Assembly: GCA_044892525.1 (NCBI GenBank)
Contig: CM097886.1
Coordinates: 66,340,001-66,404,000 of the forward strand
DNA: 64,000 nucleotides
Direction: 5' to 3'
From: Schmidtea polychroa
Taxonomy: Eukaryota
The notes beneath the pieces are model-generated. The model saw only the letters and a program-made list of their open reading frames with translations, did not search any database and was not told the origin of the DNA. The position numbers and the translations under genes are program-made. Shown one piece after another: positions 1 to 36,912 of this stretch; the stretch's first letter is position 1, and every line of letters begins with the position of its first letter.

Positions 1-60
1 AGTCGATCAATTACACATGTATGCGTCAGAGAAGACAGAGATATATGCATAGTAACAGAT

Positions 61-747
61 ATGACACAAGACCACAAATTCTTCTGGGGAGAGGTCAAAC
101 CAAATACCCCTACTGTGGTATGCGCAGGAACCCAAGGGATAGTAGCATGTAAAGGAACAAGAACTGCACCAAGAAAAGACAAACCAAGGAGTATGGCAAT
201 TAAACAAGGTCCACTGATGGAGATAACAACCAAGAAGCCAAATAAATCAGTTAGTACAAAAACAACAACAGAGCAAAACCAAACTGAAGTAACAACAACG
301 GCAACAGGGATCAATGAAGTGATTAAGGATGAAAGACGAGAAGTGCATGTAACTATCAACCTCAACAAGAAAGGAGAAGAGGTAATTACAGTCAAAAACC
401 AAGAAGGAGAACCAATCATAAGGATATGCGTAATGGCTAAGACGGGAATAATCGACTGTACAACAACACCGATAGACAAAGGTGTAGACGTCAAAATAGA
501 GACAAGGAAACGAAAAGAGCGATATCAGGTATGTATCCTTAAGAAAGGAAGAGGAACCAGCGTATGTCAACCAATAACTCGACAAAAATCCCAATTAATA
601 AACATACCATGGATACCCCGAGATCGAGAAGGGGGAGAGAAACGAGAAAATCACAGTCACCTAACAGAGAAGGAGAAGGAACGACTACATCAAGCTTTTA
701 AGAAAATCAAAGCACCAGAAACGAATACCACAGGTAGTATAATGTAG
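61..747 (+). CDS. Hypothetical 228-aa cargo protein (beta-rich middle, basic patches)
   Basis: Open 228-codon ORF with the same A-rich codon style as its neighbours. AG lies 2 nt before the ATG. No recognisable domain. Confidence 0.55.
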   Translation: MTQDHKFFWGEVKPNTPTVVCAGTQGIVACKGTRTAPRKDKPRSMAIKQGPLMEITTKKPNKSVSTKTTTEQNQTEVTTTATGINEVIKDERREVHVTINLNKKGEEVITVKNQEGEPIIRICVMAKTGIIDCTTTPIDKGVDVKIETRKRKERYQVCILKKGRGTSVCQPITRQKSQLINIPWIPRDREGGEKRENHSHLTEKEKERLHQAFKKIKAPETNTTGSIM

Positions 748-962
748 TATAATGTAGGTAGTATAATGTAGGTAGTATAATCGAACTAGCGGAGGAAGGA
801 CTAACAATAGAAATACGATAGACGGATAGAGGGAAATTGTAGATATTTTGTAAAAACGGTGTAAAGTAATTGTAAAGTTATTGTATAAAGTAAAATAACT
901 CACCAAAACCATAAAAATTAGAAAAAGAAAAAATGCAAAAGAAATGACGAAATTTATTATAG

Positions 963-2141
963 ATGACTAATCGAGAGAGACCGAATATCCGAAAGAAAAC
1001 GATCACAATGAGAGAGGGAGAGGACGATACGCCATCTAGAAAGAGAGTGAGAGATGCGGAAGTTAGCGAAACAAAACCAAGTGGTTTCGCGTATTATCGA
1101 AGGATGGGAAATGATTATAGTTTAGTACATGGAAATTTGAAGCAGGGGAGTAATGAGCAATTCAAATGTGAGAACCAGAGATACCTGTCATTTGAACACC
1201 AGACCATTTTCACCAAGGAACAGAGCCGAGCGCTAGCACTCAACGGATTTTTCTTCTCAGGAAAACCAGAAATACCCGATCAAGTAACGTGTCACTTCTG
1301 TAATGGGAAATTAGCAGAATGGAAAAAAGGAGAACACCCAAAGAAGGAACATCGTAAACGAATCCCAACTTGTCCATTCATAATGGGATTTGATGTACAC
1401 AACAAACCGGAAATAAAATACGAAGCCTTGGAGAAATTGAAAACCGAAGATGAAAAAGGAGGGAAAATGACCATCGCGATAACCAGAATCATTGATGAAT
1501 ATGTCCCAACTTGTGAAGGTGAATTTCTCACGCAAATAGCAGATAATAGAATGAGAACGTTCGGAGACGATACGAGAGGACCTGAACTAGCAATAAGAGG
1601 ATTCTATCTAACAGAAAAGCAAATACTCAAGTGTGAAAGATGCGAAAGCCAACAGAGATTACCGGAGGAAGGCATACCAGAAATTAGACATCAAGCATGG
1701 TGCCTATATCACAACGAACAAGAAACCGAATATCCAGAAGTGTTAGTAACAGAAGAAGAGGTTGACGAAGTTGTAGACAAACCCAACATGTGCAGAGCGT
1801 TGAAAGCAGCCGGAATAGGCACGACAAGAGCAAAGAAAATGGTTAACGAGAGACTACAGAAAAACGTACATATACCAACAACAACGTACGATATGATCAG
1901 AGCAATTACTCAATACAGAGAAAAACCTGAAACAAAAATAAAAGAAGAATCAATGGTCAAAGCAGCTATCTTACGAGATATCAAATGTACTATGTGTTGG
2001 GAGATGAGTGTAGAAGTTATTCATATGCCATGCGGACATTTGATCGCATGTGCCACGTGTAGTAGAAAAGTAAAGGAATGTCCTATGTGTAGACAGAGGA
2101 TTGCGCAGCGAATCAAAGGATTTCGCTACGCCGATCAATAA
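963..2141 (+). CDS. Inhibitor-of-apoptosis (IAP/BIRC-like) protein: BIR, degenerate BIR, UBA-like segment, C-terminal RING
   Basis: BIR1 has canonical C-x2-C-x16-H-x6-C (CHFC..H..C, with ALALNGFFF). BIR2 is degenerate (ELAIRGFY..CERC..H..C). RING is C3HC4 (CTMC..MPCGHLIACATC..CPMCR). ALKAAGIGTTRAKKMV resembles the IAP UBA domain. Intronless. Confidence 0.92.
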   Translation: MTNRERPNIRKKTITMREGEDDTPSRKRVRDAEVSETKPSGFAYYRRMGNDYSLVHGNLKQGSNEQFKCENQRYLSFEHQTIFTKEQSRALALNGFFFSGKPEIPDQVTCHFCNGKLAEWKKGEHPKKEHRKRIPTCPFIMGFDVHNKPEIKYEALEKLKTEDEKGGKMTIAITRIIDEYVPTCEGEFLTQIADNRMRTFGDDTRGPELAIRGFYLTEKQILKCERCESQQRLPEEGIPEIRHQAWCLYHNEQETEYPEVLVTEEEVDEVVDKPNMCRALKAAGIGTTRAKKMVNERLQKNVHIPTTTYDMIRAITQYREKPETKIKEESMVKAAILRDIKCTMCWEMSVEVIHMPCGHLIACATCSRKVKECPMCRQRIAQRIKGFRYADQ

Positions 2142-2223
2142 CAAAAATTAAAATACCGTGTATAAAGTGTAGATAATAAATGTATGAAATAACAGTGGTA
2201 GTAATGGTGTAATTATTTAGACA

Positions 2224-3822
2224 ATGAATAAAGAATCACAAACCTATGTGGAAACCGAGATGCAACAACTCGAACAGTACAAATCCATCATACAAGCCTA
2301 CGAAGCAGAAAGAGTAAAGAGAGAAATAGAAATGTACAAAACCATGTATGAGAAAAAGCAACAAGAGTTAGAAGTGGAGAAGGCGGAAGCACTAGCAACA
2401 AAAGAGAAGTGGATGAAACAGGTAGAGGAATTAACCGAGGATGTGAGAAATACCTCAACATACCAAGAATTGGAGGAAGAGCTCTCAAATTTGCGAACTC
2501 AGCGGATTATGGAGATAGTTGGGTTATGCGGAGAGATAATAATGCAAAAGGCACAAATTAGAGAAGCAAAGGAGCAATACGAAGAGGAACAGCGTAAAAC
2601 GGAACGAATATAACTACAAGCGCAACAATGGAAACGAAAATACGAAACACTCCAAACGAGGCAGAATGATAGCCACGAACATCAAATACGAAGCTACAAG
2701 GCAGAACTAGAAGAAGCAAAGGACAAATGCGCAATGATGAAAGAAAAATGGGAAAGATGCAAAAAGACCCTAAACGAAGTCAGAGGGCAGGGGAGGAGAA
2801 CACCGCACAAAGAACCCATCGTTAAAGATAACGTATTAGAGCGAATTAACACACAAATAAAAGCCCAAGCTCAGAAATGGAAGTATAAATATCTAGGAAG
2901 TCAAACTCAAGTGCTCTATTGGAAAATCAGTAGTAAGGAACTACTGAGATTACGAAAAGCAGACCAAGAATTTTACGAAACAAGGGCTACACAGCGAGAA
3001 GAAGAAGAAGTAGAGTGGAGAAAACGACATCAGAGATTGGAGAAAACCGAAAAGTGTCTCAAGCATCAAGTCCGAAAATGGAAAAAGAATTGGAAAGAAA
3101 CCAAAGAAGAATTAAGACAGCTGCCCATGAGACTGATGGAGAGAGACGACTTCAAAATGTGGGAAATGATAGAAAACCAAAAGGAGGAGATTAGCCGATT
3201 GAGTAGAGAACATAGAATCAAAACGCGGACCAGCGACGGTAGACAGAGAATCATAAAGAAACAGACCGGAGAGATAAGAAGGTATGAATACCAGGAAAAG
3301 AGATGGGAACAACAATTGACAGACCAAGATCGACAGATCCGACAATTACAAACAGAAGTGGAGGAAGCCAATCAAGAGATGAACGGATATAAAGGTATGT
3401 ACACCCAAAGGGATGTGAATTGGAAGCACCAGATTGAACTTAACGCGAAATGTAGAGAGGAGTGTGATAAGGCAATTCAACAAGCCAATCAGGAAACTGA
3501 AATAATAAAACGATGCTTCGAAGAAAATGAAGCAAATCTGAGGGCAGAAATCGAGAAACTAAAAGCGCTTGAAAGAACCCAATGATTGGAAGAGGAATTA
3601 GACGAAATGATAGAAAACGAAAGTAGATTAACGTTTTTGTTGGATGAAGAAATAAACATCTCAACGGAATTGCGGGAGGAAGTAGATCGGTTAAGGAGAC
3701 AACCACCAATATTATTAATGCCGCTCTACCCGTTCCCGTTGCAAGTGCCACAGCCTGCCGAAGTCACAACAGATGAAGGCTTCGAAGAAAATAACGAACC
3801 AAATAACGCAACGTGTATTTAG
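2224..3822 (+). pseudogene. Long coiled-coil cargo ORF interrupted by two in-frame stops (TAA 2611-2613, TGA 3583-3585)
   Basis: Track ORFs 2224-2613, 2734-3585 and 3586-3822 are all in one frame, and E/K/Q/R-rich heptad-like sequence continues across both stops. Confidence 0.7.
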
Positions 3823-3942
3823 TCGAGGAGAGATGTTGCCTGTAAATAAGAATGAAAAAAAAAACCAAATAAAAATGACAAAACCAAAAGATTCAAATAA
3901 AAAGAAGACGAAAGGAAATATGATGTGTATATTTTTGTAGAT

Positions 3943-4710
3943 ATGAATTATTTAAAAGAAAGAGAATCAACGAGTAACGAAAGAAAGTCAAATGACCAAC
4001 CTGAACAAAGCCAGAATACGATACCAATCAAACAAGAACCAATGAAATATGATAGTAATAAATGGAGAGTCAGCAAGAAGTTGTTCAAAACAGAAATTGC
4101 AAATAAAAATGTAGAGATTACGAGATTGAGACAGCATATTGTTCAATCAAGGCGATTAATAAACATTGTCAAGCAAGAAATTTTGAGGGAAATAAATGAA
4201 TCGAAACGAAAAGAGACGGAAAATAAAAACCTGAGACAGGAGATAGTGGAATTGAGAGCTCAGGCAGTAATCGAAGATTATTGGAAATCAGAAACAAGTA
4301 AGTTGAAGAAGATTGTAAATATCGATCAAGTTTATATCGAACAGTTAGAAGCACAATACGCTTATGCAAAAACGAGAATGCGAGAAAGTAAACGAGTCGA
4401 GAAGAGAAATGCAAAACTCAAGGAAGAGATCAAGGAACAAAGAGAGGAAACAGAAAAACAATGGAAGTTGAAAGAAAATTATCGGAGAATTTTATATCAA
4501 AAGCGACGAAGCATGCAAACACTGCAGACGACAATGACCATCAAACAAAGAAAATGGAAAAGTAAAGAGAGGTAATTACAAGAAATACCAGAATTAAAGA
4601 AACAGTTGGTGGCAACACAACTCGAAGTAATAAGAATGAACGAGTTGAGTAAAAGACGAGCACCTGAACCTCCCATAAAATTAAGGGATGAGGTCGGTGA
4701 CTCCCAATAA
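3943..4710 (+). pseudogene. Second coiled-coil cargo ORF with one in-frame TAA (4573-4575)
   Basis: ATG 3943 follows ATTTTTGTAG. The frame continues past 4575 (LQEIPELKKQLVATQLEV..) to TAA 4708-4710. Confidence 0.6.
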
Positions 4711-4786
4711 ATGAGACAAACTAACCGTGTAAATAAATTGTAAATAAAGCCAAGTAATTATTATTAAAGTATATGTATATGTAAAG

Positions 4787-5844
4787 ATGAGAAGCCTAAT
4801 TGTGGTGATGATTATAATGGCATTGCCAAGAACCCTGCAAGCAGAAGAATCAATGATCAGATGCCAAAAAGAATACCCATACCGAAGAGAAGATAGCACA
4901 TGCAGTAGCTTTAAATCAATCTGCGAAAAACCCAATGAGGAATGCGAACAAATCAAGTTGCAATGTTCGCAATGTCCACCAACCACTGAAAGTTCAACGG
5001 AAGTGCAAATAGCTCAGACAATAAAAACAATCTTGGAGCAAGAAATGAAAGTTATCAGAACCCAGATAGCAGCATTGGCTAAACAATGTCAAAGCCAGAA
5101 ATCAAAGAGAGAATCCCAAACAGATCCAGCCGCAACCCAAATGAGAATGATGATAAAAATTAAAAACGAAATGACAAAAACCTTGAAAGAAATGACAAAA
5201 GAAATCCTCACTACCATAAATAAAAATCCGATGAACTCCGAAAAGATAGAGGAAATAAAACAACAATTAATGACAGCCGCCAATGGACGTGCAAGTAATT
5301 GCAGAATGGTAGTGAAATCGCTAGAGGAAATGAAAGGAAAAAAAAACCCAGCATTAAAAATGAGGTGACGAAAACCTTAAAAGAAATGACAAGAGAAATC
5401 CTAACTATCATAAATAAAAACCCAATGAACTCCGAGAAGATGATTAAAACCTTAGAGGAAATAAAGAAAGTTGTCACCTCGGAAGAAAACAAATTCAACA
5501 AACCCGAAAAATCAGAAGTTGCGGATACAACCCAATTGGGAGAAATGATGAACAAACCCAAAGTATTAGAACCCAGAGAGTCCGAACCCCTCACAATATT
5601 GATCCTATTAGCGGCAAGCCTAATGATAAACATCACCATACTGAGTCTAATTGCACTCAAACCCATTCCCAGTAAAGAAAGAAACAGAACCCTGAAACTA
5701 AAAGAACAATCACGAAGTATTCGTATCCCAATGGAAGAACAGCTAGTCCAAACAACAAACCAACCAAGATACTTCAAATCTTCTCCAAACATTGAAACCA
5801 GAGCCGTCATCGAGACGAGATCCCGAACAACAGAATTCTACTAA
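4787..5844 (+). CDS. Secreted or type-I membrane protein encoded in two frames joined by a -1 shift at the A9 run 5338-5346
   Basis: N-terminal hydrophobic signal peptide, Cys cluster, KSKR dibasic site, duplicated helical repeat, then in the -1 frame a TM-like segment LTILILLAASLMINITILSLIAL and a short tail. Confidence 0.6.
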
Positions 5845-5917
5845 TATGACATTACGACAGTATAAACATTTTGTGACATTATAAAACATTATCAAACGAT
5901 TGCGAGTCTAAGACTAA

Positions 5918-5998
5918 GCAGGTGAGCTCTATTGCTAAAACTACTCCCCATTGTATTTTCTCTTCGGGTTCTAGACGGCCGATAGAAGGTCTTACGTC
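5918..5998 (-). other. Conserved family block (TGACGTAAG.CCTTCTATCGGC..ATGGGGAGTAGT..GCTCACCTGC), copy 1
   Basis: The reverse complement matches 57553-57637 in four co-linear blocks and 12733-12795 in two blocks. Confidence 0.8.
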
Positions 5999-6860
5999 AT
6001 TGATCATTTTCTATTTTTACTTTTCTATCTCATTCGGTTATGGTCTTCATTTCTAGTTGTTTTCTATTGTTTCCTTTCAAAATTTTGTGCAGGGATGCGC
6101 CCTCATTTTTCTATTAATAAAGGTTGCTAGGTATTTCTTTTGATATTTATGAATATTTAAACTATCTCGCAAAAAAAATTTGAGCATGGATCGGCCCTTA
6201 TTTTCCAGCTAATAATTATTGTTCTACACTTCCTACAATATCTAAATTATCCTTTGAAAAATTTGAGCAGGGATTGGCCCTTATTTCCAAGTTAATCCGC
6301 GCTTCCCATAATATTTAAATTGTACTTCAAAAAAATTTGAGCAGGGATCTGCCTGTATTCTCAGTCCTAACCTATGTTTGGCCAAAGTACTTCCAGCGAT
6401 AGGACCCGTGAGGAAGCCCCCACATTTCGGCCCAATCCAGCTGCGTGATTGAAGAACCTCATGTCCACCGGCTGAGCTCCCGAAGGCACCTCATGCCATG
6501 ACATGAAGTTCCTCAACTCCACGTTACTATCGTTCACAATCAACAAATAATATAATTGAACTCAATAAAAACTATTATTTCAAACTTGAAACTAAATGAA
6601 ATTAAACAATAATGAAAAAAAAACTAAACTAAATTGAATATAAAATTTATTTAACTTTAAACATTACCTAAAATTTCATATTAAAATAAAATTACCAGTC
6701 CAATCCACAAGGGCATAAAATCGAAAATTGAGAGCATATGTTCGTTACCTGACAAACGATTTGTTGTGTAAAACTGAAAACTAATTTAACAAGTTGAACA
6801 ACTGAAATTTCAATCCGTATTTATACTGATTGAATTGTACGCCTACGCATTCTCTGCTAC

Positions 6861-6881
6861 TATATCCAATTAGAATGCGAG
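6861..6881 (-). promoter_or_regulatory. Promoter-like motif CTCGCA..AATTGGATATA of module A
   Basis: Same motif as 54488-54516 (+) and 30302-30327 (+). About 0.7 kb inside the shared terminus. Confidence 0.4.
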
Positions 6882-7558
6882 GCAATTCTGGTTAATTTTT
6901 GCATGCATGCATGCATGTGTGCAATTATTGTTTTTTTTAATTTAATTAATTTAGTTAATCAAAATTCTAATTTTTATTAACTTTTAAGATTTATTTTTAT
7001 AAATTCTATAATCAAAATAGTTTTTTGCTAATTTTAATTTAGTTTTACAAGTTTTGTAATTTAAATAAGTTCAGTTAATTTTACTTTAGTTTCATTAATT
7101 TAAACAATTTGGTTTTATAAGTTGTATAATTTAAATAATTTTGTTGGTTTTATTTTTAGTTTTAGTTTTATAAATTTTATGGTTTATCTAATTTTACTAC
7201 TTTCTTTCTACATTTTTTATTATTTCTCCAGTTTACTAGATAATTTATTTTAAATTTTAAATTTATTTATTTAGAAATTTCCCATATTATTAATTAATTC
7301 ATTACCCATTATTTTATTTATTATTATTTTAATTTTTAGTTGTTAGATATTCCGAATGCGATGTTTCTCCTAATTGTGTTAGTGATTGCGACCTTTATTT
7401 TCGTTCCTTTATTTTATCACCCGGGTCTTATTTATCATCAATGTGTTATGTACTTTAATTTGTATTGATTGGTGTTTTGATTTAACTTGGTGCGATTTTT
7501 ATGTTATGTATTTTTGATTCATTAAAACAAGCTCTCGATTCTCGGTTCTAGCCCAACA

Positions 7559-9113
7559 TAACCATCGACCACCAATTAATAAAATAATCCGAACTATTTA
7601 ACATATATCCTTAATTTAGGTTACCTTCAAAATTATAGTTGAAAAATTTGTCATCAAAGACCCCCAATAAACCATATCGTCATCAACTACCACCTAAATA
7701 TGCTAAATTGGCTTATCAGAATATATATTTAACTTATTTTATATTCAAAAATATAAATTGTAAATTTTCATGAATGACCCCCTCAACTTCATATAGTCAT
7801 TAATCACTACCTAAATATATTAAATTGGCTTATCAGAATATATATTCAACTTATTTTATATTTAAAAATGTAAATTGAAAATTTTTATGAATGACCCCCT
7901 TACAAACCATATAATCATCAACTACCACCTAAATATACTAAATTAGCTTATCTTAATATATATTTAACTTATATTATATTTAAAACTATAAATTGTACAT
8001 TTTCATAAATGACCCCCCTCAGACCATATAGTCATTAAGGATTACCCAAAAGTACTAATTTAATTTGTTTTCAGATATGTTCAACTTATATTACCTTTAA
8101 AAATATAACTTGTATTTTTATTTAACCGACCCCCCTCAAATCATGTAGCCATTAACTATTACGTAGGTATACTGAATTATATTATATTCATAGACAGTTA
8201 AATTATATTTCATTTAAAAATATAAATTCATAAATTTTTGTAAATTCCCCCTCCCCCCATATGTGGTAATCTTATACAAATATAAATTTATATTNNNNNN
8301 NNNNNNNNNNNNNNNNNNNNNNNNNNNNNNNNNNNNNNNNNNNNNNNNNNNNNNNNNNNNNNNNNNNNNNNNNNNNNNNNNNNNNNNNNNNNNNNNNNNN
8401 NNNNNNNNNNNNNNNNNNNNNNNNNNNNNNNNNNNNNNNNNNNNNNNNNNNNNNNNNNNNNNTATCACTCTCATTATTATTATTACTATTATCATTATTA
8501 TTATTATTATATTATTAAAATAATTATCTTTATTTCATGAAAATAAAATTATAAAACAAATTATTGATTTTGGAATTCCCCTATCTCTAAATTTAGTTTC
8601 AATGGCCCTATCTTCCAATAAAATTACGGAAAATCACTAATATCTATTTTTAGTAACATCCCCCCTTGAAACGACATCAACTATTATTAATTTAAATTAT
8701 ATCCATATATGTATATGTGTGTGGGTGTATATGTATATATATGTGGATGTGTGTATGTATATATAGATTTAGAAAATAACAAATACCATAATCTTCCCCC
8801 TCAAGACCCCTTTAAAGTAATAAAAATAGAATAATTTATAAAAATTATGGACAAAATTATGGACAAAATTATGTTCAAACTAAATCAAAAGACAAAACTC
8901 AATTGTAAACTAAATTTATTAATTCCAATCACCAAATTTATTTACATCATTGTCTCTTTGAATCATATTCATACCAAAAAGTCCTTCGAGCTCAGTTGAT
9001 GGACCATCCCGATGAAATACATTTCCTGGGGTTGGAAAATGGAAAACTTATATTAAAATATCTTTCAGAATTTCTTTTAGATTTCCACAATTAAATAATT
9101 CCAAATTATTTCT
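7559..9113 (+). repeat. Left arm of a ~1.5 kb inverted repeat, with five ~117-bp tandem subunits and an (ATT)n tract (gap)
   Basis: Near-identical reverse complement of 14876-16387. GACCCCC recurs at 7659, 7776, 7893, 8011 and 8128. Confidence 0.9.
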
Positions 9114-10420
9114 ATATAAACTACTATAAACTATAACCTATGTCAATTATAAAATATAAATCATGAATAGTGCTATATAAATAGTGAATGTATCCAATCC
9201 TTAAATACTTGTATATAAATTTATAAATTGTAAATAGTCATGTATAAATTATAAATGTATCGGGGTTATAAAATATAAGTTATAAATAATTATATAAAAA
9301 AAATTTTTTTTGATTATAAAATATAAAGTATAGATGGTTGCACCTAACTTATACATGTATCTTGATGCTCGAAAATAGAACCCATAATTAGCTATAGATA
9401 AATTCTGTCTACGAAATAGTAATTCTAAATAATTATATAAAATTTTTGATTACAAAATATAAAGTATAAATGATTGAATATAAATTATACATATATCTTG
9501 ATTTTATAAAAATAAACTATATATAAATTACAAAATTATATATAAATTTTGATCATAAAATATAAAGTATAAAATGGTTATATATAGAGGTTGAGTATAA
9601 AATATAAATAGTTATATACATATGTAACTTGTAAATATAGAACTAAATCATAACTGGCTATATATCAATTTTGATCGAAAACTATGAAGTATAAACAGCT
9701 ATATATAAATTGAGTATAGATCTTAATTAGTAAAATGCGAATTAGAGATAACCATTTGTAAAGTATAGAAACATAATTCATGAACCATACCTAAAGTATA
9801 AACTAGAATTCATATTAACTACCCAGGTTCCGAACGTAACCTGCCCAATTTGTAAAGTCTAATATCAGTCACCTCCAGAGATATGATCCTATGCCAAGGA
9901 TATGAAATATGAATTTTCGTTAAATTATAAATTCTAAATGCATACAAATTAAACTAAGAAATATAATTCGTATTAGTATTATCATTATTGTTATTATTAT
10001 TACTGTCAGTATTATCACTATTATTACCCTTNNNNNNNNNNNNNNNNNNNNNNNNNNNNNNNNNNNNNNNNNNNNNNNNNNNNNNNNNNNNNNNNNNNNN
10101 NNNNNNNNNNNNNNNNNNNNNNNNNNNNNNNNNNNNNNNNNNNNNNNNNNNNNNNNNNNNNNNNNNNNNNNNNNNNNNNNNNNNNNNNNNNNNNNNNNNN
10201 NNNNNNNNNNNNNNNNNNNNNNNNNNNNNNNNNNNNNNNNNNNNNNNNNNNNNNNNNNNNNNNNNAAAATCCAAATTTGATTGAATAATCGATTTAGGAT
10301 TTCCCCTCACAACTAAATTTAGAACCTACCCTTTTGCCCCAATAAGAATGATCATAATTCCTAAAGTCTATTTTTAGTAACACCCCCCCCTCGGAGAAAA
10401 TGCTAGGACTATTAATTAAA
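9114..10420 (+). repeat. Older diverged copy of the same repeat family (AT-rich tandem units, ATT tract, core)
   Basis: TTTTGATyAyAAAATATAAAGTATA-like units at 9.3-9.7 kb. The 10290-10420 segment resembles 8570-8700. Confidence 0.5.
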
Positions 10421-11417
10421 TAAGAACATGGGTGGATACATCTATATAGATATGTGTGTAAACGTGGGTAACTATACGTATATAATAAGTTAATTTAACC
10501 CAAGCTTGTCAGTGACGGATACATCTTAGTTAACTTAGCGGCCCCAGAAATTAAAAGCCATGTAAAGCCTACATTGTTGACTTAAACTAATTCATCGAGA
10601 ACACTAGGAATGCATTGAGACAGCCGATACCAACTATTGAACTCCACGGAATCAACTGCATGAATTATCGATAAATGACAAAAGTACATCTTACTTAAAA
10701 TTAAAAGCGTTATCAAAAGGGAATACTAAATTAAATTATTCAACAACATTTCTAACATAATTAGATACAAATCAAACTAAAGATACCAACACAGAGTCAT
10801 AAAAAATTCCTTAAAGGCTTTGAACAATCGGCCATTCCGTCCGAGTGAAAGATTTCCACCAAATATATCTAAAATCGAAAAGTTATTATTGATAAATAAA
10901 GTACTTACAAGTTAATCAAAGGGGATTACACCACTCATGACGAGCACAACCGAGGGATAAGTAAGTAAAATGAGGAGCTAGGCTCGTCAATGATACTTAT
11001 CGCCCCAGTGTACCCGAATTTAGTGGTAAATTACTAACAGGATCCGATTTCCTAAATTCGAAGAAAAAGTAAAGTATTAAATTTTGAATTACCAGCTAGT
11101 GGTAAACAAGATTTTGAAAATTTAAATGATTGAATTAAACAAAGTTAATTAAATTTAGGATATATTTAGTTAAAGTATGAGATTTACAAAAACTTTACTC
11201 AGGACTATTGAATTTTTTTTAAAAATAATTTCGGAAATCCAGGTTGTAATTGCAGTCGTTTTTTATTACTTCATTAAATTTCTTTTTAACTAAGATACAA
11301 CTATCAAAAATTTTAACTGTGAACGCAAGATTTTAATTATGAACTCCGTTGTCCGAGTCCCTTAAAGACTCATATCAGTCTGTGCCAAATGACCTAAATT
11401 AGATTTGCATTATAGAA

Positions 11418-11783
11418 ATGTCTCACTCCGGCGACTCAAACGGTGATGAAGCCTACAATCAAATGATCACGCGGCTCCGGACCCGGTACATCTGGTATCG
11501 GATACACGATTGGAACCGGGGGTTGGACCTCGATAATTACGGTCCGGTCATCCGAAGTGGCCCAGAGCCCGATGCCCCGGCGTGGGTGAAAATAGAGCCC
11601 ACCAACAACGTGTTATGGGAAGCCCGCGATCGAGCGGCCGACGAAGTAGTAGAGGCCCAGAAGCGGCTGAGGAGATTCGAGCTCCAGCTCAAAGCCGAAA
11701 TAATGGGAGTAACTCCTGAAGAGCTGGAGGAGACAGATGCCCCTCCACGAAAACGGGGAAGGCCCCGTAAGAACCCGGCCTAA
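11418..11783 (+). CDS. 121-aa protein with a C-terminal AT-hook (RKRGRPRK)
   Basis: GC-rich ORF in an AT-rich background, TTATAG 2 nt before the ATG, canonical RGRP AT-hook core flanked by basic residues. Confidence 0.65.
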   Translation: MSHSGDSNGDEAYNQMITRLRTRYIWYRIHDWNRGLDLDNYGPVIRSGPEPDAPAWVKIEPTNNVLWEARDRAADEVVEAQKRLRRFELQLKAEIMGVTPEELEETDAPPRKRGRPRKNPA

Positions 11784-12104
11784 CTTATCGATAGTAACAA
11801 TTCGGGCGAACTATTTAATCTAATTAGTGATACTGTGTGGTGTTTGACTTTTTGTTTTTGTAACAACTATGACGAACTGTAGCAATTTTTATTATTAAAA
11901 CTTTTACATCATAGTTGGTCGTGCGTATTCATAATATAATAAATCATCTTTGTCATTATATAGAAGTCTTATTGCGTATGGGGTGTCCCCAGGGACGGGA
12001 TGACCCACCCCCTTACTCTTCAGTTACTACTTTTATGAAAATAATCGAATTACCTTTATGCACATGGAAACGAGCGACGAAATTTTCATTATTGTTTTTC
12101 TTCA

Positions 12105-12578
12105 GTGTACAAGCTACTTGAAAATCTACGAAAAGACCGTGAACAGGCCCAGCAACAATCCGAGGACCTTCGAAGTCGAGTCGAGAAGCTCAAAATCAAG
12201 TGCCGAGAACTCGAAGGCACTTGGTTCAGTCCGGCTGAGATGAAGAAACGGACAACACACATCTCACAACTCCAGATCCAGGCGGGGCAAGATCAACTCG
12301 AAATCCGAGCGTTGAAGCTACAAGTACGCTCGCTCGAGAGCAAACTGAATGAAAAATTCATCCAGGACGCCCTCCAAGAGCAGATTCGTCCCCTTCCGGT
12401 GGAGCTAGCCAAGATATACCCACCTGCCCAGGCAAGCAAGCCGAAACGTAAGCGGCTAGGGCGGAATACCCGGGAAAAATTGAAGAGGGTCTGGCTGGCC
12501 GAGCAAGAAAAATCGAAAGAGCCTGCAGTCACTTCACGATCCCGAGGAACGTTTGAGAGTGTAATCCCTCCTGAGTAA
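12105..12578 (+). CDS. Coiled-coil/basic protein of an unrecognised family (LEGTWFSPAEMK); 5' end probably spliced
   Basis: Motif shared with 56491-57218. A strong acceptor TTTTTCTTCAG ends at 12105. Confidence 0.7.
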   Translation: MYKLLENLRKDREQAQQQSEDLRSRVEKLKIKCRELEGTWFSPAEMKKRTTHISQLQIQAGQDQLEIRALKLQVRSLESKLNEKFIQDALQEQIRPLPVELAKIYPPAQASKPKRKRLGRNTREKLKRVWLAEQEKSKEPAVTSRSRGTFESVIPPE

Positions 12579-12704
12579 AACATACCTTGTAATATAGTAA
12601 TGATTAAATAAATGATTCTTGTTGTCTAATGCATATGTGATCAAACTTTGTGATGGTCCAGAACCAGACGGTCGGCAGAAAGGCGTTTGGGGAAACAATC
12701 TCGA

Positions 12705-13325
12705 TAAGGGACCGAAATAAATCGGACACGTGCCTTCTATCGGCGTCCGTGAACCCATGGAGTACTCGACAATTATAGTGCCTTGAGGCGCTCACTTTTT
12801 GCGAGTACTCAACCCCTTGGTACAGTACCAACGTTGATTGCTCAACGGGTACCAAGAGGAAAACAATGTTGTATTCTGGGTTACGCTGGTAACAGCACCT
12901 AAACATTCAACCACCTGTAACCCACCAATATTGACATATCCATGTACTAAGTTCAAGTGTTTGGGAAAACAATTTGCTCGTTCTTGAATGCATATCACTT
13001 TATATCAGCTTTTACTCTCTCCTTTATATCTATTCTCGGGTTCTTTCACCAATTAAATTTTCAAATCCCGGCTGAGCCCCCAAATTTGTATGGTGGGTTA
13101 CTGATGATCAAATATTTTGCTCTTTAGTGCTGTTACCAGCGTAACCCAAGATACAACATTGTTTACCGCTTGATACCCGTTGAATGATCAACGTTGGTTC
13201 TGTATCAAGAGGGTGAGTGCTCGCAAAAAGTGAGCGCACTACTTGCACTGTAATTGTCGAGCACTCTACTGGGTTCACGGACTATCGTTTGAAGATATAT
13301 GTCCGATTTACGCAGGTCCCTTATT
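12705..13325. repeat. Imperfect inverted repeat, ~220-bp arms around a ~160-bp spacer
   Basis: Perfect complementary blocks 12877-12898/13127-13148 (22 bp) and 12788-12805/13220-13237 (18 bp), with co-linear partial matches out to ~12705/13325. Confidence 0.9.
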
Positions 13326-14126
13326 ATAATTACTTTCTCAACTATGCCTATACAAACTTTCTATCCTCAAACGATCATAAGTCATCAGGAATCATACATT
13401 AATCTATTAAAACCTGTTCATACAATACCACATCTAAAATGTTTGAATATAAATTAAGTGAAACATAGCCATAGTTTATTAAACATACCTTAAGAAAATT
13501 TTGAGGATAATGAATTTAATTAGAACACAATCAAAAAAAAAACAACTTATATATTGGTGAACATACAAATAAGGGTCAGAAATTTCATCAACCACAACAA
13601 CCAAATGTAATAACTTTACAAGAACCATGATTGTTTATGACCGCGTATTATTTGACTAAGCGTATTTCGCGGTGACTATGATTGTCCTAGTTGACCTACA
13701 ATGACACTCACCTTTGTTGAGCCCGGGTAGTTATAGAGATATGGTTAGATCAACAATCAAAATCTCACAATACATTTTTGTTAATATTATATTTTTAATT
13801 CAAGTTAAATAAATTCAAAATACATCAATAACTGTTACAAAACAATTCCCTATATAATTTTAAGAGATACTTCTAGAAAATTCAAATTGACTCAAACTTT
13901 ATTTTTTAAAAATTTGTTTTCTATTAATAATAGATTTTTTCTAGAATTTTAAGAAAATTTTAATTCAAAATTTATAATAATATTAAATTAATTTTACAAT
14001 ACTCGTTGCTTACATTTTAAACAAAACTTATACGTCAGTTTGAAGTATTTTAAACTTGTTTTAACTAATTATTTTTTAACAAACCATTTTTTTTTATTAT
14101 ATATTATTAATTAGTGATATTTTGCA

Positions 14127-14793
14127 ATGAAAATTTTATCAGTTTTTTTTTTCTAATCAATGTTCACTATGTAATGTCAGCTACAGTTAATGAAAATAAT
14201 TGCGAAGGTATTTGGCACTTATTTTTATTATATTTAAAAATTGTTCAGTTTGTGTGAAGTTTGTGAGACGCCTGAAAGATAGTCTAGATGGAGATGAAAG
14301 TACAAATATCGAAAATATTGAAAATAAATTCAAAGAGATGAGCAAAACAAGTAAAGGAAAAGAATAAAGTCTTGTAAGGTATTATAACTGATTAATATAA
14401 AATTGTAATTTATTTTTAGTGTTATTATATTGGAGGATTGGTAACATCTACTACATATATTGTAAAACATTTGTCTCAGCCTTTGAGTTGGGTTATGCCC
14501 GCTGAAAAAGTCTGAAAAACTAAAAGCAATGGATTCACAAATTTGTGAATTAAAATATGGTATGTTCAGTTAAGATTTTAAATATTAATTCAACTATTTT
14601 TCAGACAAACCTATTGATCTTACTGGTATTAATCTAAACAAAGCTCGCGTTAAAGATCTCAACAAATATTAGAAAGCTGGGGTGAAGAATGTAAAGGTTG
14701 TACAGAAAAAACTGATTTTATCCGATTAATAAATGAAAAATGCCCATTTATGATCCTAAAGCAGCCAAGCAAAGAAATAAAGCCGATTTGTAG
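14127..14793 (+). pseudogene. MANF: MANF/CDNF (ARMET) homolog, 4 exons (14127-14207, 14249-14373, 14420-14559, 14605-14793), with an in-frame TAA and four apparent frameshifts
   Basis: [45 protein letters not shown] and C-terminal ADL. GT-AG introns of 41, 46 and 45 bp. TAA at 14365-14367. Confidence 0.85.
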
Positions 14794-14875
14794 TTGGAGT
14801 TTTTTTTTCAGTTTTTTTTCAGGATGTTGTAATTAAATAAAATATTAAAATTCTTTTTGATCGAATATATTTGTG

Positions 14876-15546
14876 AGAAATAATTTGGAATTATTTAATT
14901 GTGGAAATCTAAAAGAAATTCTGAAAGATATTTTAATATAAGTTTTCCATTTTCCAACCCCAGGAAATGTATTTCATCGGGATGGTCCATCAACTGAGCT
15001 CGAAGGACTTTTTGGTATGAATATGATTCAAAGAGACAATGATGTAAATAAATTTGGTGATTGGAATTAATAAATTTAGTTTACAATTGAGTTTTGTCTT
15101 TTGATTTAGTTTGAACATAATTTTGTCCATAATTTTGTCCATAATTTTTATAAATTATTCTATTTTTATTACTTTAAAGGGGTCTTGAGGGGGAAGATTA
15201 TGGTATTTGTTATTTTCTAAATCTATATATACATACACACATCCACATATATATACATATACACCCACACACATATACATATATGGATATAATTTAAATT
15301 AATAATAGTTGATGTCGTTTCAAGGGGGGGATGTTACTAAAAATAGATATTAGTGATTTTCCGTAATTTTATTGGAAGATAGGGCCATTGAAACTAAATT
15401 TAGAGATAGGGGAATCCCAAAATCAATAATTTGTTTTATAATTTTATTTTCATGAAATAAAGATAATTATTTTAATAATATAATAATAATAATAATGATA
15501 ATAGTAATAATAATAATGAGAGTGATAATGTTACTGGTAACAATAC

Positions 15547-15620
<74 letters not shown>

Positions 15621-16387
15621 TTAATAACGATAATAATAATAAATATAAATTTATATTTGTATAAGATTACCACATATGGGGGGGGGGGGGGGAGGGGTCA
15701 TTTACGAAAATTTATGAATTTATATTTTTAAATGAAATATAATTTAACTGTCTATGAATATAATATAATTCAGTATACCTACGTAATAGTTAATGGCTAC
15801 ATGATTTGAGGGGGGTCGGTTAAATAAAAATACAAGTTATATTTTTAAAGGTAATATAAGTTGAACATATCTGAAAACAAATTAAATTAGTACTTTTGGG
15901 TAATCCTTAATGACTATATGGTCTGAGGGGGGTCATTTATGAAAATGTACAATTTATAGTTTTAAATATAATATAAGTTAAATATATATTAAGATAAGCT
16001 AATTTAGTATATTTAGGTGGTAGTTGATGACTATATGGTTTGTAGGGGGGTCATTCATAAAAATTTTCAATTTACATTTTTAAATATAAAATAAGTTGAA
16101 TATATATTCTGATAAGCCAATTTAATATATTTTGGTAGTGATTAATGACTATATGAAGTTGAGGGGGGTCATTCATGAAAATTTACAATTTATATTTTTG
16201 AATATAAAATAAGTTAAATATATATTCTGATAAGCCAATTTAGCATATTTAGGTGGTAGTTGATGACGATATGGTTTATTGGGGGTCTTTGATGACAAAT
16301 TTTCAACTATAATTTTGAAGGTAACCTAAATTAAGGATATGTGTTAAATAGTCCGGATTATTGTATTAATTGGTGGTCGATGGTTAT
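14876..16387 (-). repeat. Right arm of the ~1.5 kb inverted repeat, including an (AAT)n microsatellite ~15465-15640
   Basis: Reverse complement of 7558-9113. Related GGGGGTCAT subunits continue slightly beyond 16387. Confidence 0.9.
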
Positions 16388-17599: not shown

Positions 17600-18549
17600 A
17601 TGATGATTTGAGGTGAATTTTATAAACGATCGAATGTAGGACTGATCAGAGACGCAGATGTATCAATACGCCGCTGATCCTTCTTACATTAGATAAAAAT
17701 AATAAGCAGGATTTGATCTAGACATAATTAATATTACCAATAACAATCAAAGTCAAATTATAATCAATAATATCATTAAACTTTAAAAATTCAAATAACA
17801 ATACTCACTATCAATGTGACCTTCAAGTTTTTCGCAACAAAAATTTGGCATAAAAAAGTGATTACTTGTGACTAGAATGCGTCGGTATATATACCTATTT
17901 TGTACACGTGTATGTATTGATGCATTAAAACAAACTCGAATTCTTTTTATTCCAGAATTTTCTATTTCGTGATTTTGATATTTTTAATGGCAATTTTAGT
18001 GCTATAATTTTTGTTTTTATTTTTAAATTTTTATTCTTTAATTATTTTTTCATTAATTTTACGTCCATGATGGATTTGGAACGGTTCCAGAACATTCTAT
18101 TTTATTTTTAATACAATTTTCATTTTAACTGCTGTTTTATAAATTTCTTTTTAAGATTTTTTATTTTTAATACTAATTTATTTATTTTCTCTAACTTTTG
18201 TTGTTCTAGATGGCCGTTGTGATGGTCGTCGCCATTTTATGGAATGTTCTGGGTTTTTCTGGAATCTTTTTACTGTTTTTATCGTCTTTTAAGTTATTCG
18301 AGTTTGCTTTTTGTAGTTCTATGTTTATTTGGTTATTTTTGAGTTAGGTTTTGCATAACTTCTTGCTTTTGTATAATTTTATTTACTTTGTGGGTTTATT
18401 ATTTTTGTTGTTTTCTCCTTTAATTACCATTGTTTATTTGGTGTAGGTTTTAATATTTAACTATACTTGGTGCTTTTTTACTTGCTGTGTACTTACACAT
18501 TTCAGTCACAATTAGTATTTTGGGTCTAGAAATCAGTTCTAGCCCAACA
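17600..18549 (-). mobile_element. Module D: LTR-like end of the same family
   Basis: GTTCTAGCCCAACA at 18536-18549 is identical to 7545-7558. T-rich tract, then TATATATACCTATTTT (17886-17901) ~0.65 kb inside, as in module A. Confidence 0.55.
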
Positions 18550-18554
18550 TACGC

Positions 18555-20790
18555 AATTGTTGCAACTCACATTTTTTGCTTTCATGGATTTTTGGTCCAA
18601 ATTTTTTTTTATCAGACTATAGTGAGGGGGTCTCGATGGTCCTGGGATTTTCAATACAAAAAATTTTTTTCCAATACAAAAAGGTGGTCTTCAATAAAAA
18701 AGTATGGAATTTTCAGACTATAGTGAGGAGGTTCTCGATGGTCCTGGGATTTTCAATACAAATTTGAATTATCAATAAAAAAGAGTGGTAATTTAAGGTC
18801 TCAGGATATTTTCAATACAAAAGGTGGTCTACACTAAAAAACAGTGGTAATTTAAGGTCTCACGATATTTTCAATACAAAAAAAAATTTGGTACTTATTT
18901 GTTAGCACCTAGTTAAAAATATTTAGTAACCGATTGTTGGGAACTGTTGAATTATTATTATTTTTATTATTATTCCATTTAAATTTTCATTTGACTTTGA
19001 AAAATATTTCTTTGAAATTAACTTAAAAAAAAAATTTACATTTAAATTTTCATTAAAAATTACATTTCTCAAAAATGTTGGTGGTTATTCAATCTTTTGA
19101 TAATAAATTTAAAAATCTTACTTTAATTTACTTATTTAGCTTTAATTTAAAATTTGAATCATTGGTTACTTAATTTTAAATTTTGAACCTTAATTTACTT
19201 ATTTAAAATTTTTAACTTTAATTACCTAATTATTCTTTATTTCTTAATTTTACACCTTATTTTCATATTTAACCAATAATTTCATGTGGTCATCTGGTTG
19301 TTAGGACTTGGTATCTAGTTGACAGTGCTTAGTACTTGGTATCTAGTACCTGGTTGATGTTGGTTGTGAGTACATAGTTGGTTGAAGGTACTTAGTAGCA
19401 GGTAACTGGTTGTTGGTAACTAGTTGTATGTACTTGGTAGGTGGTGGCTAGTTGTTAGCTGGTTGTTTTTCGTTGTTAGTACTTGGTATCTAGTTGGTTG
19501 CTTGTTTTTGGTTGTTAGTACTTGGTTGATAATGCTTAGTACTTGGTTGTTGTTGGTTGTATGTACTTGGTAGGTGGTTGTAGGTACTTAGTAGTTGGTT
19601 AATATTGCTTAGTACCTGGTTGATGTTGGTTGTATGTACTTGGTATGTGGTAGCTAGTTGTTAGCTGGTTGTTGTGGGTTGTAAGTAGTTGGTAGGTACT
19701 TAGTAGTTGGTAATTAATGCTTAGTACCTGGTTGTTGTTGGTTGTATGTACTTGGTAGTTAGTTGTTAGCTGGTTATTGTAGGTTGTAAGTAGTTGGTAG
19801 GTGGTTGTAGGTACTTAGTAGTTGGTAATTAATGCTTAGTACCTGGTTGTTGTTGGTTGTATGTACTTGGTAGTTACTGGTTGTTGGTACTAAGTTGTTG
19901 GTTTGTTGTTGAATTATTATTAAAATTTGTCTTTGAAAATTAAAAATTATTAAAAAAAAATTAAATAAAAATTACCATTGAAAAATATTTCAAAAAAATT
20001 TTCATTAAAAAATTTCAATTCTCAAACACCTATTATTTCAACTTTTTGTTAATAAATTTTAAAATCTTACTTTAATTTATTTATTACATTACTTTAATTT
20101 ACTTATTTAAAAATTATTACTTTAATTTACTTATTTAACTTTAATTTAAAATTCTTTTACCATTGATTACTTAATTTTAAAATTTATACCTTAATTAACT
20201 TTAATTTAATTTTTTAGAACCTTAATTTAGTTATTTGAGCCCATTGACTACTTAAATTAAAATCTTTGACCATAATTTACTGTAGTTCAGAAACCTGAGC
20301 CCATAATTTACTTTAATTTTAAAATTTGGACCATCATTTACTTTAATTCAAAAATCTTAACCCATAATTTACTGTAATTCAATTTTTAGACCCATAATTG
20401 GCTTTATTTTAAAAAATTTACCACGTTTCTTATTGAAGGCCACCTTTTTGTATTGAAATTCTCAGGACCAAGAAGACCTACATGAATTGAACTAGAAAAA
20501 TCCATGCTTTTTTAGTGGTAGTCGGATTTTTGTATTGAAAATATCCTGAGAACTTAAATTACAACTGTTTTTTAGTGTAGACCACCTTTTGTTTTGAAAA
20601 TATCCTGAGACCTTAATTTACCACTTTTTTATTGATAATTCAAATTTGTATTGAAAATTCCAGGACCATAGAGACCCTCTCACTATAGTCTGATAAAAAA
20701 AAATTTTGACCAAAAATCCCTGAAAGCAAAAAATGTGATTTGCAACAATTTTACCCCCCGGGGTGGGGGTAATTGTTGCGGTAAGCAACT
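18555..20790. mobile_element. Foldback- or Helentron-like non-autonomous element with modular inverted ends and a central GTT/AGT simple-repeat tract
   Basis: 18555-18880 is the reverse complement of ~20440-20750. Direct duplication ~18950-19280/19915-20250. Simple repeats 19300-19910. GC hairpin TTACCCCCC..GGGGGTAA just after 20750. Confidence 0.6.
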
Positions 20791-21427: not shown

Positions 21428-22924
21428 TCAAAGGCTGATCGTTTTGAAGACGTTCATACCATCCAATGCAGTACTCAACAGCAACCCTGGGATTTGTGGA
21501 TGCCAATGGAGCTCTTTGATTTCCTTCTGTCCCATGTGATTAAACAGCAGATGAACGGGGAATTCCTCTGAGCCCTGCAACTCCCCGGCATCTTGCTCCA
21601 TACTGATATCCCACAGTGTCAATTGATCATCGTCAGAACTGCACGCAAACACATATTGGGATTGAGGGCACCATTCGATAGATGTGATTGGATAATCCCT
21701 GTGATACTAATAACCAACCGTAAACCCGGTATAATTTACAACAAATCAACTCACGTCATACAAATGTGTATAAGCTGGCTGTGTTGTGCTCTTGAACATT
21801 CGTAAATCCCACACTTTCACAATGCCATCATCTCCTCCCGATACGAGGGAGAAAGCACAATTCTTTGACCAAGATATTACATTGACATCCTTGGTATGAG
21901 CGTCTGCCATCGTTACGTGGTGCTTCATGTCTCGGGCGTCCCAAACAAGAATGCTTCTGTCACTGGAACAACTGATAAGAATATTATCTTGATTCGGAGA
22001 CCACTGAATGTCTTCTACTGAAGAAGTGTGTTTGGATAGCGGTTGATTGATAACCTCAAATCCGTGCTCCTTTGCCTGGGTTACATAGATTTTACCATCA
22101 TTATCGCCTGTAGCTAATTGTCCAATTTTACAATTAGACCAATCCATTGCATATCCTTCTGTTGAATGATTTCGAATGGTATAAATAGGCTTGATTAGTT
22201 CATTTCGACCCATATAATCTGCCATGTATGCACTATCATTAACAGCCCATAATTGATTTTTTAAATCCCATATGTGAACCTAAACAATATTGAAACAAAC
22301 TTCATAAATGTATTGCTCATTACCTGCCCAAGATCTGACCATGAAGCTGCTACAGGATTATTGATCTGTTGGGTTCTGACCCGATTAACTCCACCATTGT
22401 GCAAGATATTAACGTGTGTTAATTACCTTTCATCATCTAAAAATTCATCTTCACTTTCTTCTTCTGATTCTTCATCACTTTCGGTATTTTCCTAATTGAA
22501 TGAACAGTGAAAATTATTATGTTAAATTTCATATTAACTTTTTGTTTTAATTTTTGCAAATTACTCATTTTCATAACAGTCAAAATATTGCTATGGCCTG
22601 CTGCATCTTCGCGGCCAGATATTGAATAAACTGTGTATGGGAATTTTTCAGATCTTTCTTCTCCGGTACCCAAGTTATCATTTATAATATCGAAACTTAA
22701 GCACGAGTGATCAAGTTTTAGCCTATGATGCAAAACATATGCAGATTCATCCATTTCTAACTCAGTATCATCATCGATTTTGTGTGTTTTGGGATTAAAA
22801 ACTTCTGATTCTATTTTAAGTATTTAGTAATTAAAGTAATTTACAAATTTCTACCTTGTTCGTTATCATCTAGTTCCATTTGTTCATTTTCACTTTCAAT
22901 CATTGCAACATTATCATCACTCAT
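21428..22924 (-). CDS. GRWD1: Glutamate-rich WD40 protein GRWD1/Rrb1, 5 exons (22855-22924, 22539-22810, 22324-22491, 21755-22279, 21428-21706), one in-frame TAA at 22423-22425
   Basis: [17 protein letters not shown], acidic tract, [51 protein letters not shown]. Introns of 44, 47, 44 and 48 bp. 438 codons in total. Confidence 0.93.
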
Positions 22925-34199: not shown

Positions 34200-35181
34200 A
34201 AGGTAACCCCCGTTCACCGCGACTCCGGTGAGTGCGAATTCGTTATAACTCGTGTTATGTACATTTATTCGGAAGTTAAGACGCTCTGTAATGCTTTTTC
34301 CATTGAAGTGTTATTTTTACGTCCGAATACCACTTCCATCTTACAGCCTATGGATCAAGGCATAATATCAGCTTTCAAAGCTTATTATTTAAGAGAAACT
34401 ATGCGTCAACATATTAATGAAACTGATGGAGGTGGTAAAGATGCCATGCGGCTTTGGTGGAAACAATTTAATATTATGAAAGCCATCAGAAACATCGACA
34501 AAGCGTGGAATGAAGTTACCCAGTCGTGTATGAAGGGTGTTTGGAAACGATTGTTCAGTGAAATTATAGAAATTCACTGCAATTATGAAAATAGTATTAT
34601 CGAAGAGCCTAGGCGTCTAGCCATTTCCAGAGGCATTGAAGGTGTTGATAAAGATAATTTTCATACTTTGTTAAAATCACACGGGATGCCTCGAATAATG
34701 AAGACCTACAGGGAATGGACTGTCATACACTTCTAGAAAATGACGTATTCGAATCTATTCCAGTCAGAAATTTGACTGTAAAAATTATCGAAAAGGCTCT
34801 TTCTCTGTAAAATCAACGCATGGAGTTGTTAGAAGAAAACGATGAAGATTACGAGCGAGTAAATACTGTCAAACGTGGCTGTAATGAATTGCTTGATGGT
34901 TATTGGCAAATTTTGCGCAATAAACATAGAGAAGCCAAACAAGGGAATCTAGATTCCTTTATACAACGTCGAGAAAAATTAATAAATTATTAATTTATCC
35001 ACTGTATTATTTTTTAATTCCTAATGTTATTTGCCTTATTATTGTTCTAATGTTTATTTAATAAATATTAAGTTTTTCGAGTCTTTAAATGTTTTTTTTC
35101 AAAAATCGCCCGTTGATCGCGATATTTCGCTTAACGCGATCTTGTCCAGAACGTATCCCCGCGTTGAACGGGGGTTACCTG
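34200..35181 (+). mobile_element. Internally deleted Tigger/pogo DNA transposon with DDE_1 transposase fragment (34257-34736)
   Basis: TIR (C/A)AGGTAACCCCCGTTCA(A/C)CGCG at both ends, TA TSD. FLRPNTTSILQPMDQGIISAFKAYY. Confidence 0.92.
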
Positions 35182-36387: not shown

Positions 36388-36617
36388 ATAACCTATTTCC
36401 CAGGTGCGCAATAACCTATTTCCCAGGTGCGCAATAACCTATTTCCCAGGTGCGCAATAACCTATGTCCCAGGTGCGCAATAACCTATGTCCCAGGTGCG
36501 CAATAACCTATGTCTTAGGTGCGCAATAACCTATGTCCCAGGTGCGCAATAACCTATTTCCCAGGTGCGCAATAACCTATTTCCCAGGTGCGCAATAACC
36601 TATTTCCCAGATGCGCG
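36388..36617. repeat. Minisatellite, 10 copies of 23 bp (ATAACCTAT[T/G]TCCCAGGTGCGCA)
   Basis: Head-to-tail units every 23 bp with no spacers. Confidence 0.95.
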
Positions 36618-36912
36618 CTAAATCATCGACTCAGTTCGTGGCAACTTTATTCGCGAGATCGGGAATTTTGTGATGTTCAACGATATATCCGCGATAACTC
36701 ATAGTTGTTCAAAGTATTCATATCTACCTACTATGTGTGGTAACGTACGCCAGTATGAGGTGCTTTTCTAAATATTTAAAAAAATGACTACTATGTAACC
36801 TTTTGTCTATTTATGTTGGTTAACAGTTTTTTTGGCATATTTTTGACAATTTTTTTAAAATATAAATCCAAATGTTCAGTAATATTTACTTATAGAATAT
36901 TTAATAATTTAG

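Follow-up and report, generated by a model that had tools for sequence, protein, structure and literature searches.

An intronless IAP gene in Schmidtea polychroa, probable cargo of a Burro-like giant retroelement

A 64-kb stretch of Schmidtea polychroa DNA, hereafter the window, carries an IAP gene whose product is a predicted IAP-family RING-type E3 ubiquitin ligase, composed of a BIR, a non-canonical BIR, a UBA-like domain and a RING. It is probable that this gene is among the accessory genes of a Burro-like giant element, and that the array of ORFs in which it lies is a decayed fragment of the accessory block, bordering on the 5′ end of a different LTR element that is truncated. That a retroelement can include an IAP domain is already known, having been published in outline for Burro (PMC6431247), and the finding is therefore of limited surprise to a specialist. 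The features on which our reading is based are collected in Table 1.

Table 1. Features of the IAP, of the surrounding array and of the adjacent LTR. Window positions are counted from the first base of the 64-kb stretch.
Feature	Position in protein	Position in window (strand)	Basis or description
ORF-A		1-747 (+)	Frame open from first base of window; start left of window; no break inside window
Spacer motif before IAP		858-890 (+)	Short tandem of TGTAAAG/TGTATAAAG-type TATA-like units, about 80 nt 5′ of ATG
IAP gene		963-2141 (+)	392 aa; unbroken ORF, no intron needed
BIR1	aa 65-150	1155-1412 (+)	Pfam, PDB matches, alignment, AF2 pLDDT >90
BIR2, non-canonical	aa 190-250	1530-1712 (+)	Alignment and AF2, pLDDT 83-93
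UBA-like helical domain (putative)	aa 262-320	1746-1922 (+)	AF2 and profile-profile match
RING, C3HC4, C-terminal	aa 340-385	1980-2117 (+)	Pfam, PDB; followed by tail common to P0004
Coiled-coil gene 1		2224-3822 (+)	About 530 codons, one frame; 2 in-frame stops
Coiled-coil gene 2		3925-4710 (+)	About 260 codons, one frame; 1 in-frame stop
Membrane-protein-like gene		4787-5844 (+)	1 frameshift, associated with internal 89-nt duplication
Equivalent spacer motifs		2157-2197, 3841-3850, 4726-4749	Other three array spacers
Tandem units		6080-6370	About four imperfect units of about 83 nt; array on one side, LTR on other
PBS-like block (TGG...)		6402-6422 (-)	Directly downstream of minus-strand LTR
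LTR, about 1.1 kb (predicted)		6423-7558 (-)	13-mer at 7558-7546, A-rich part, ATTGG / TATA-like pair

Predicted domains of the IAP protein

The IAP ORF reads through without any intron. An AlphaFold2 (AF2) model, built on a 53-sequence IAP alignment, contains four confident modules at aa 65-150, 190-250, 262-320 and 340-385, with pLDDT mostly >90. Its best fold match in the PDB is 3t6p (cIAP1 BIR3-UBA-CARD-RING), followed by many single BIR domains, and the top solved-structure matches of the protein are NAIP, cIAP1 and XIAP. BIR1 is recognized by Pfam (BIR, aa 77-140, E 9.5e-15), and fold matches between the modeled domain and PDB structures reach target TM-scores of 0.7-0.8. The zinc site of BIR1 is canonical, C110-x2-C113-x16-H130-x6-C137, with all four residues in conserved columns of the alignment. 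At the C-terminus, Pfam identifies an IAP/MDM2-type RING (zf-C3HC4_3, aa 340-382, E 1.7e-11) which also matches the cIAP and XIAP RING structures in the PDB.

BIR2 has the ligands C224-x2-C227-x15-H243-x3-C247, in which the spacing is H-x3-C as opposed to the canonical H-x6-C. All four residues (C224, C227, H243 and C247) are invariant across the 53-sequence IAP alignment, and the sole Pfam match in this domain is a weak, BIR-like zf-C3HC at aa 207-242.

For the helical domain at aa 262-320, a UBA-like label is plausible, though not proven, on the basis of position and a profile-profile match. The domain sits where the BIRC2/3-type UBA sits in cellular IAPs, and MAFFT aligned aa 275-320 onto the cellular-IAP segment that corresponds to Pfam UBA_BIRC2-3 (PF21290). 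When the UBA-position segments of four family members were compared with those of 16 cellular IAPs by hhalign, the match had a probability of 82% (E 1e-5, 44 columns), and the reversed control gave 0.2%. Pfam detected no UBA in the IAP protein, the isolated domain had no match by phmmer against the PDB, and with aa 255-335 modeled separately (helices at pLDDT of about 80-87) Foldseek did not find a UBA, the best E-value being 2.7. An earlier note on this DNA had described a complete, intronless BIR-BIR(degenerate)-UBA-like-RING ORF; the ORF, BIR1, the degenerate BIR2 and the RING all stand, and the UBA-like label does so only in part.

The A-rich array and the neighboring LTR

All long ORFs of positions 1-5850 are on the + strand. 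Besides the IAP they comprise ORF-A, two coiled-coil genes and a membrane-protein-like gene, and Pfam assigned no family to any of these four, nor was a homologue found for any of them. The membrane-protein-like gene is laid out as an N-terminal signal-like segment, a Cys-rich part, a heptad region and a C-terminal hydrophobic segment, and no homologues of its first reading frame were found. On the + strand, A accounts for 44% of the bases at positions 1-5850, where the AT skew is +0.40 to +0.44 and the GC content 0.36-0.39; the rest of the window has no AT skew and about 28% GC, consistent with the >70% A/T reported for Schmidtea (PMC11410931). The fraction of A at third codon positions is 0.44 for the IAP; the remaining ORFs of the array have 0.45-0.52, and the host-type exons of the window 0.27-0.34. 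In its 44% A, its common strand and its third-position A bias, the A-rich ORF array described in the earlier note was confirmed. Since the IAP shares the third-position A bias of the array, it appears to have been under the same mutational regime for a long time, as opposed to being a recent host retrogene, and the composition of the array speaks against recent capture of a host IAP.

The same observations bear on whether the IAP is a host retrogene, or a piece of some unrelated integrated element (virus-like or DNA), with transposons as no more than its neighbors. Such an origin would fit with the lack of any retroelement enzyme in the window, with the frequent occurrence of IAPs in large DNA viruses and with the nature of the region, which is a dense repeat mosaic. 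However, the array ORFs share one strand and an extreme A bias unlike that of host exons, three co-oriented neighbors of the IAP are decaying in the manner of a dead element copy, genes of DNA viruses were not found, and the closest full-length relative of the IAP is located in a Burro-like retroelement, as described below. We consider an origin of this kind highly unlikely. A DNA-virus origin of the baculovirus type was rejected in view of the same-strand A-biased array and the absence of DNA-virus genes. The non-canonical BIR2 and the helical domain, with no DNA-virus genes nearby, also set the protein apart from baculovirus-type IAPs.

The neighbors of the IAP in the array carry four breaks, three in-frame stops and one frameshift, distributed across three genes. 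It had been pointed out that the IAP, unlike its two coiled-coil neighbors, is still intact, and this is true of the ORFs but has no statistical weight: the IAP makes up 22% of the coding length of the array, and four breaks would miss it by chance at p about 0.37. The intactness of the IAP is therefore not evidence of selection, and we rejected the proposition that an intact IAP implies selection.

Beyond the array, an LTR can be read at positions 6423-7558 of the minus strand, in the opposite orientation to the ORFs. It starts with a 13-mer that occurs in three exact copies in the window, at 7546-7558 (-; site A), 18537-18549 (-) and 54149-54161 (+; site C). At all three sites similarity ends exactly at the outer end of the 13-mer, and inward of it they share only A-rich low-complexity sequence. 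The 15-nt core of the PBS-like block, at 6408-6422 (-), lies 1137 nt downstream of the 13-mer at 7558 and recurs once more in the window, at 55075-55089 (+), after the site C LTR; the chance expectation is 0.06, and conservation around the block at the two sites extends over about 40 nt. No tRNA gene with which to compare the block was found in the window. Read from its 13-mer, the site C LTR (within 54149-55100) runs through about 300 nt rich in A, then an ATTGG / TATATAAGG pair and AATAAA, ends in ...CA after 926 nt, and is followed by TGG and the conserved PBS-like block. This promoter-to-polyA order, with ...CA and then the TGG block, is characteristic of a 5′ LTR with a primer-binding site behind it. 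We rejected the view that the three 13-mer sites are copies of one LTR, as they have in common the 13-mer, an A-rich composition and, at two sites only, the PBS-like block.

The earlier note described the array as bounded by a repeated TG..CA-type terminus. Such a layout would make the array the 3′ end of a plus-strand element, with 5850/6423-7558 as a 3′ LTR that ends in ...CA at 7558. The terminus is indeed repeated, in the form of the 13-mer, and its conserved edge at the exact outer end of all three sites (7558 here), the + sense strand of the array and a purine-rich run on the + strand just left of 6423 are all compatible with this layout. On the + strand, however, the LTR would have to begin at 6423 without a starting TG, and at site C the motifs ATTGG, TATATAAGG and AATAAA occur in that order ahead of ...CA, TGG and a ~20-nt block conserved with site A. 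This is the signature of a 5′ LTR and PBS and not that of a PPT and 3′ LTR. The 13-mer appears to start an inverted LTR instead of ending the array's own 3′ LTR, and the plus-strand layout is distinctly unlikely.

The array could alternatively belong to the minus-strand element itself, as an antisense cassette in the leader that follows the LTR and PBS-like block (6402-7558), with each gene served by its own TATA-like spacer promoter. This arrangement would require no truncation event to explain the order of LTR, PBS-like block, 83-nt repeats and array, and on the Burro-like contigs as well the IAP precedes gag, at the upstream contig end. It would also give a role to a TATA-like motif of the type TGTA(A/T)A(A/T)A(A/G), which is present in every one of the four spacers (as a small tandem in three), 48-102 nt before the next ATG, and was not found in the coding parts of 1-5960. 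The motif is, however, short and without window-wide enrichment, and we treat these putative promoters as only a lead. Two further observations count against the cassette. The array ORFs are A-rich at third positions on their own coding strand, which is the sense-strand bias of a reverse-transcribed genome, whereas antisense genes would be expected to show the complementary bias; and the accessory ORFs of the Burro-like contig L001 are in sense. We regard the cassette as unlikely. On this reading the array would constitute a set of independently promoted host-manipulating genes (IAP, coiled-coil, membrane protein) placed antisense between 5′ LTR/PBS and gag, and we know of no antisense accessory block in this position in Burro or in any other animal retroelement.

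In our preferred reading, the minus-strand LTR at 6423-7558 would be the 5′ LTR of another, truncated element that abuts the array, the array being that element's antisense cassette only as the less likely alternative. The truncated element would belong to a family with two further copies in the window that have the terminus, and at site C the PBS-like block, in common with it. Near 5850-5950 the strand composition reverses, which is what a junction of two converging units would produce, and the LTR with its PBS-like block lies 560 nt from the end of the array. The copy in the window would then be a partly decayed fragment of the IAP-carrying element, whose own gag-env-pol and LTRs would lie outside the window. 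The array runs off the left edge of the window, and a Pfam scan of ORFs within the window detected no RT or IN domain. Searches with the proteins of contig L001 did not detect relatives of gag, env or protease in the window, no second copy of 5850-7558 was found in the 64 kb, and a same-orientation LTR pair around the array was not seen in the 7.5 kb that are visible. Neither a second LTR nor pol was found within the window to the right of the site C LTR. The lack of any gag, PR, RT, IN or env relative within the window, together with an adjacent LTR that is single and in opposite orientation, was counted against the Burro-like reading, as were the failure of the other array ORFs to match contig L001 and the fact that gag does not come after the IAP here.

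The remainder of the window contains several other repeats. A large inverted repeat (7558-16387), broken by N runs at 8295-8462 and 10032-10265, starts at base 7558, where the 13-mer of the LTR ends. Its arms, 7558-9113 and 14876-16387, are 97-100% identical and contain 117-nt tandem repeats, and its center holds GC-richer ORFs at 11418-11783 and 12105-12578 (+). A second inverted repeat (18555-20750) has its arms at 18555-18882 and 20527-20750, with G/T-rich tandem repeats between them at 19286-19911, and begins 6 nt after the second 13-mer, so that two of the three LTR starts adjoin an inverted repeat. The ORF at 12105-12578, inside the large inverted repeat, is related (33% identity over 72 aa, E 2e-7) to an ORF at 56356-57078 that lies inside the element starting with the LTR at 54149. 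A local duplication mosaic is formed by 43372-45568, which is repeated at 46412-48608 (100% identity, 2197 nt), and by 37877-38724, repeated at 45565-46412 (99.9%). The ends of this mosaic (37877-38724, 43372-48608) are not TG..CA, and either segmental duplication or an error of assembly may account for it. We also noted a DDE_1 (pogo/Tigger-type) transposase remnant at 34257-34736 (+; Pfam E 6.8e-18), about 15 tandem copies of a 23-nt unit at 36312-36667, and a host-type WD40-repeat exon at 21746-22225 (-) with a codon-3 composition clearly unlike that of the A-rich array.

Relatives of the IAP on Burro-like contigs

A homologue search of 1.84 billion representative proteins with the IAP gave 6841 matches, nearly all of them cellular multi-BIR IAPs that align domain by domain. 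Only P0004 and P0117/P0152 aligned in a single colinear stretch. P0004, a 169-aa UniParc entry, is 40% identical over IAP aa 224-392 and has the same C-terminal tail; P0117/P0152, with 403 aa, are 27% identical over aa 37-391. The ligands of BIR2 are kept in both P0004 and P0117, and these proteins have the H-x3-C spacing in common with the window IAP, which indicates that the three form one lineage. A word-indexed protein search, using the single IAP and a family profile, returned only molluscan and insect IAPs in addition to P0117. The exact IAP sequence was absent from the protein collections searched, and a contig carrying the exact P0004 sequence was not found. When the family alignment was used for locus scans, the giant-virus MAGs (viral contigs) yielded nothing beyond RING matches and the JGI metagenomes no match at all.

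P0117 and P0152 are encoded on contigs L001 and L004, which come from two different ENA metagenome assemblies. The gene order on L001 (1-13302) and L004 (1-6828) is RING ORFs, IAP, dUTPase, RING and a giant ORF, all as separate sense ORFs, and the IAP is upstream of gag, in the same sense and near the upstream end of the contig. On L001 the giant ORF exceeds 3857 aa; a weak Retrotrans_gag match is followed in it by Monjiviricetes_fusion (E 1.4e-73) and, further on, by a retroviral aspartyl protease. Like the array, L001 is A-rich on its sense strand. By tblastn the IAP matches L001 with E 5e-26 over 321 aa, the reciprocal search giving E 7e-22; in tblastn comparisons of all array pieces with L001, and of all L001 proteins with the window, the IAP and RING were the only matches. 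Neither the 13-mer nor the PBS-like block was found in L001.

The placement of env in one giant ORF with gag and pol, in frame and flanked by the two, was reported as the first case of its kind and as a hallmark unique to Burro (PMC6431247). The ORF with gag, mononegavirus-type env and protease on the P0117/P0152 contigs thus has a layout published only for Burro, and this supports the proposal that the IAP is retroelement cargo. In their 2019 article, Arkhipova and Yushenova noted the accessory ORFs of Burro, citing Jurka 2007 and Grohme et al. 2018 (PMC6431247), and reported BIR, RING (AIR1), Smc, MATH/TRAF, ankyrin and BCL2-like motifs in Burro1/GYPSM1 and Burro2-4 (PMC6431247). The statement in the earlier note that giant Burro Ty3/gypsy elements of Schmidtea mediterranea were reported to carry an anti-apoptotic domain was correct, as BIR, RING, Smc and BCL2-like motifs are all published (PMC6431247). 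Our literature search found no further paper on a planarian retroelement IAP. As to the broader suggestion that the IAP is cargo of an LTR element, it gains from the presence of its relative as an accessory ORF on Burro-like contigs and from the array-type A bias, but the LTR next to the array, being inverted, does not bear it out.

Proposed role and comparison with known systems

If this reading is correct, the element carrying the IAP would be a giant, endogenous retrovirus-like Ty3/gypsy element of the Burro type with several accessory genes. By analogy with cellular and DNA-virus IAPs, BIR1 may bind pro-apoptotic partners, and a RING dimer could, as in those proteins, ubiquitinate either the pro-apoptotic partners or the IAP itself. 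The expected effect, again by analogy, would be a delay in the death of cells that express the element. To our knowledge, retroelements with apoptosis and ubiquitin regulators are rare outside the Burro elements of planarians. They are relevant to the persistence of endogenous retrovirus-like elements in animals with continuous stem-cell tissue renewal. What is added here is a defined, stand-alone IAP gene with a putative UBA-like domain, a conserved non-canonical BIR2 that marks a retroelement-borne IAP lineage, and evidence for this lineage in two independent metagenome samples, again on Burro-like elements, along with the caution that the neighboring LTR does not appear to be the 3′ LTR of the array.

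Compared with baculovirus-type IAPs (BIR-BIR-RING), the likeness is a functional analogy to a virus-borne, intronless apoptosis inhibitor with two BIRs and a RING. Baculovirus IAPs differ in having two canonical BIRs and no UBA and in residing in dsDNA virus genomes, whereas the carrier here is a retroelement-type array. With cellular IAPs of the cIAP1/2 and XIAP type, the window protein shares the BIR fold, a helical domain at the UBA position and an IAP-type RING. The cellular proteins have three BIRs as opposed to two, and the window IAP has a shortened BIR2 spacing, no CARD, a different C-terminal tail and a putative UBA that Pfam and Foldseek miss.

The array resembles Burro elements in the presence of accessory ORFs with BIR, RING (AIR1), Smc-like coiled-coil and other apoptosis/ubiquitin motifs, in an A-rich sense strand, in an AT-rich planarian-type host and in decayed copies with stops and frameshifts. 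It differs from Burro, as known to us by published description, in that BIR and RING share an ORF of their own, of 392 aa, together with a putative UBA-like domain, and also in that gag-env-pol is absent from the window and the neighboring LTR is inverted. Burro elements are characterized by PR-RT-RH-IN of the Ty3/gypsy type, with gag-env-pol in a single giant ORF, by a pair of LTRs in the orientation of the genes, and by thousands of copies in a planarian (Dugesiidae) host. Relative to P0117/P0152 on contigs L001 and L004, identity is 27%, and the surroundings are not the same: dUTPase and RING ORFs flank the IAP there, with gag downstream, whereas here it lies beside coiled-coil genes and is not followed by gag. 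Both are nonetheless intronless, separate ORFs that encode a canonical BIR1, a BIR2 with H-x3-C, a helical linker, a RING and a similar tail.
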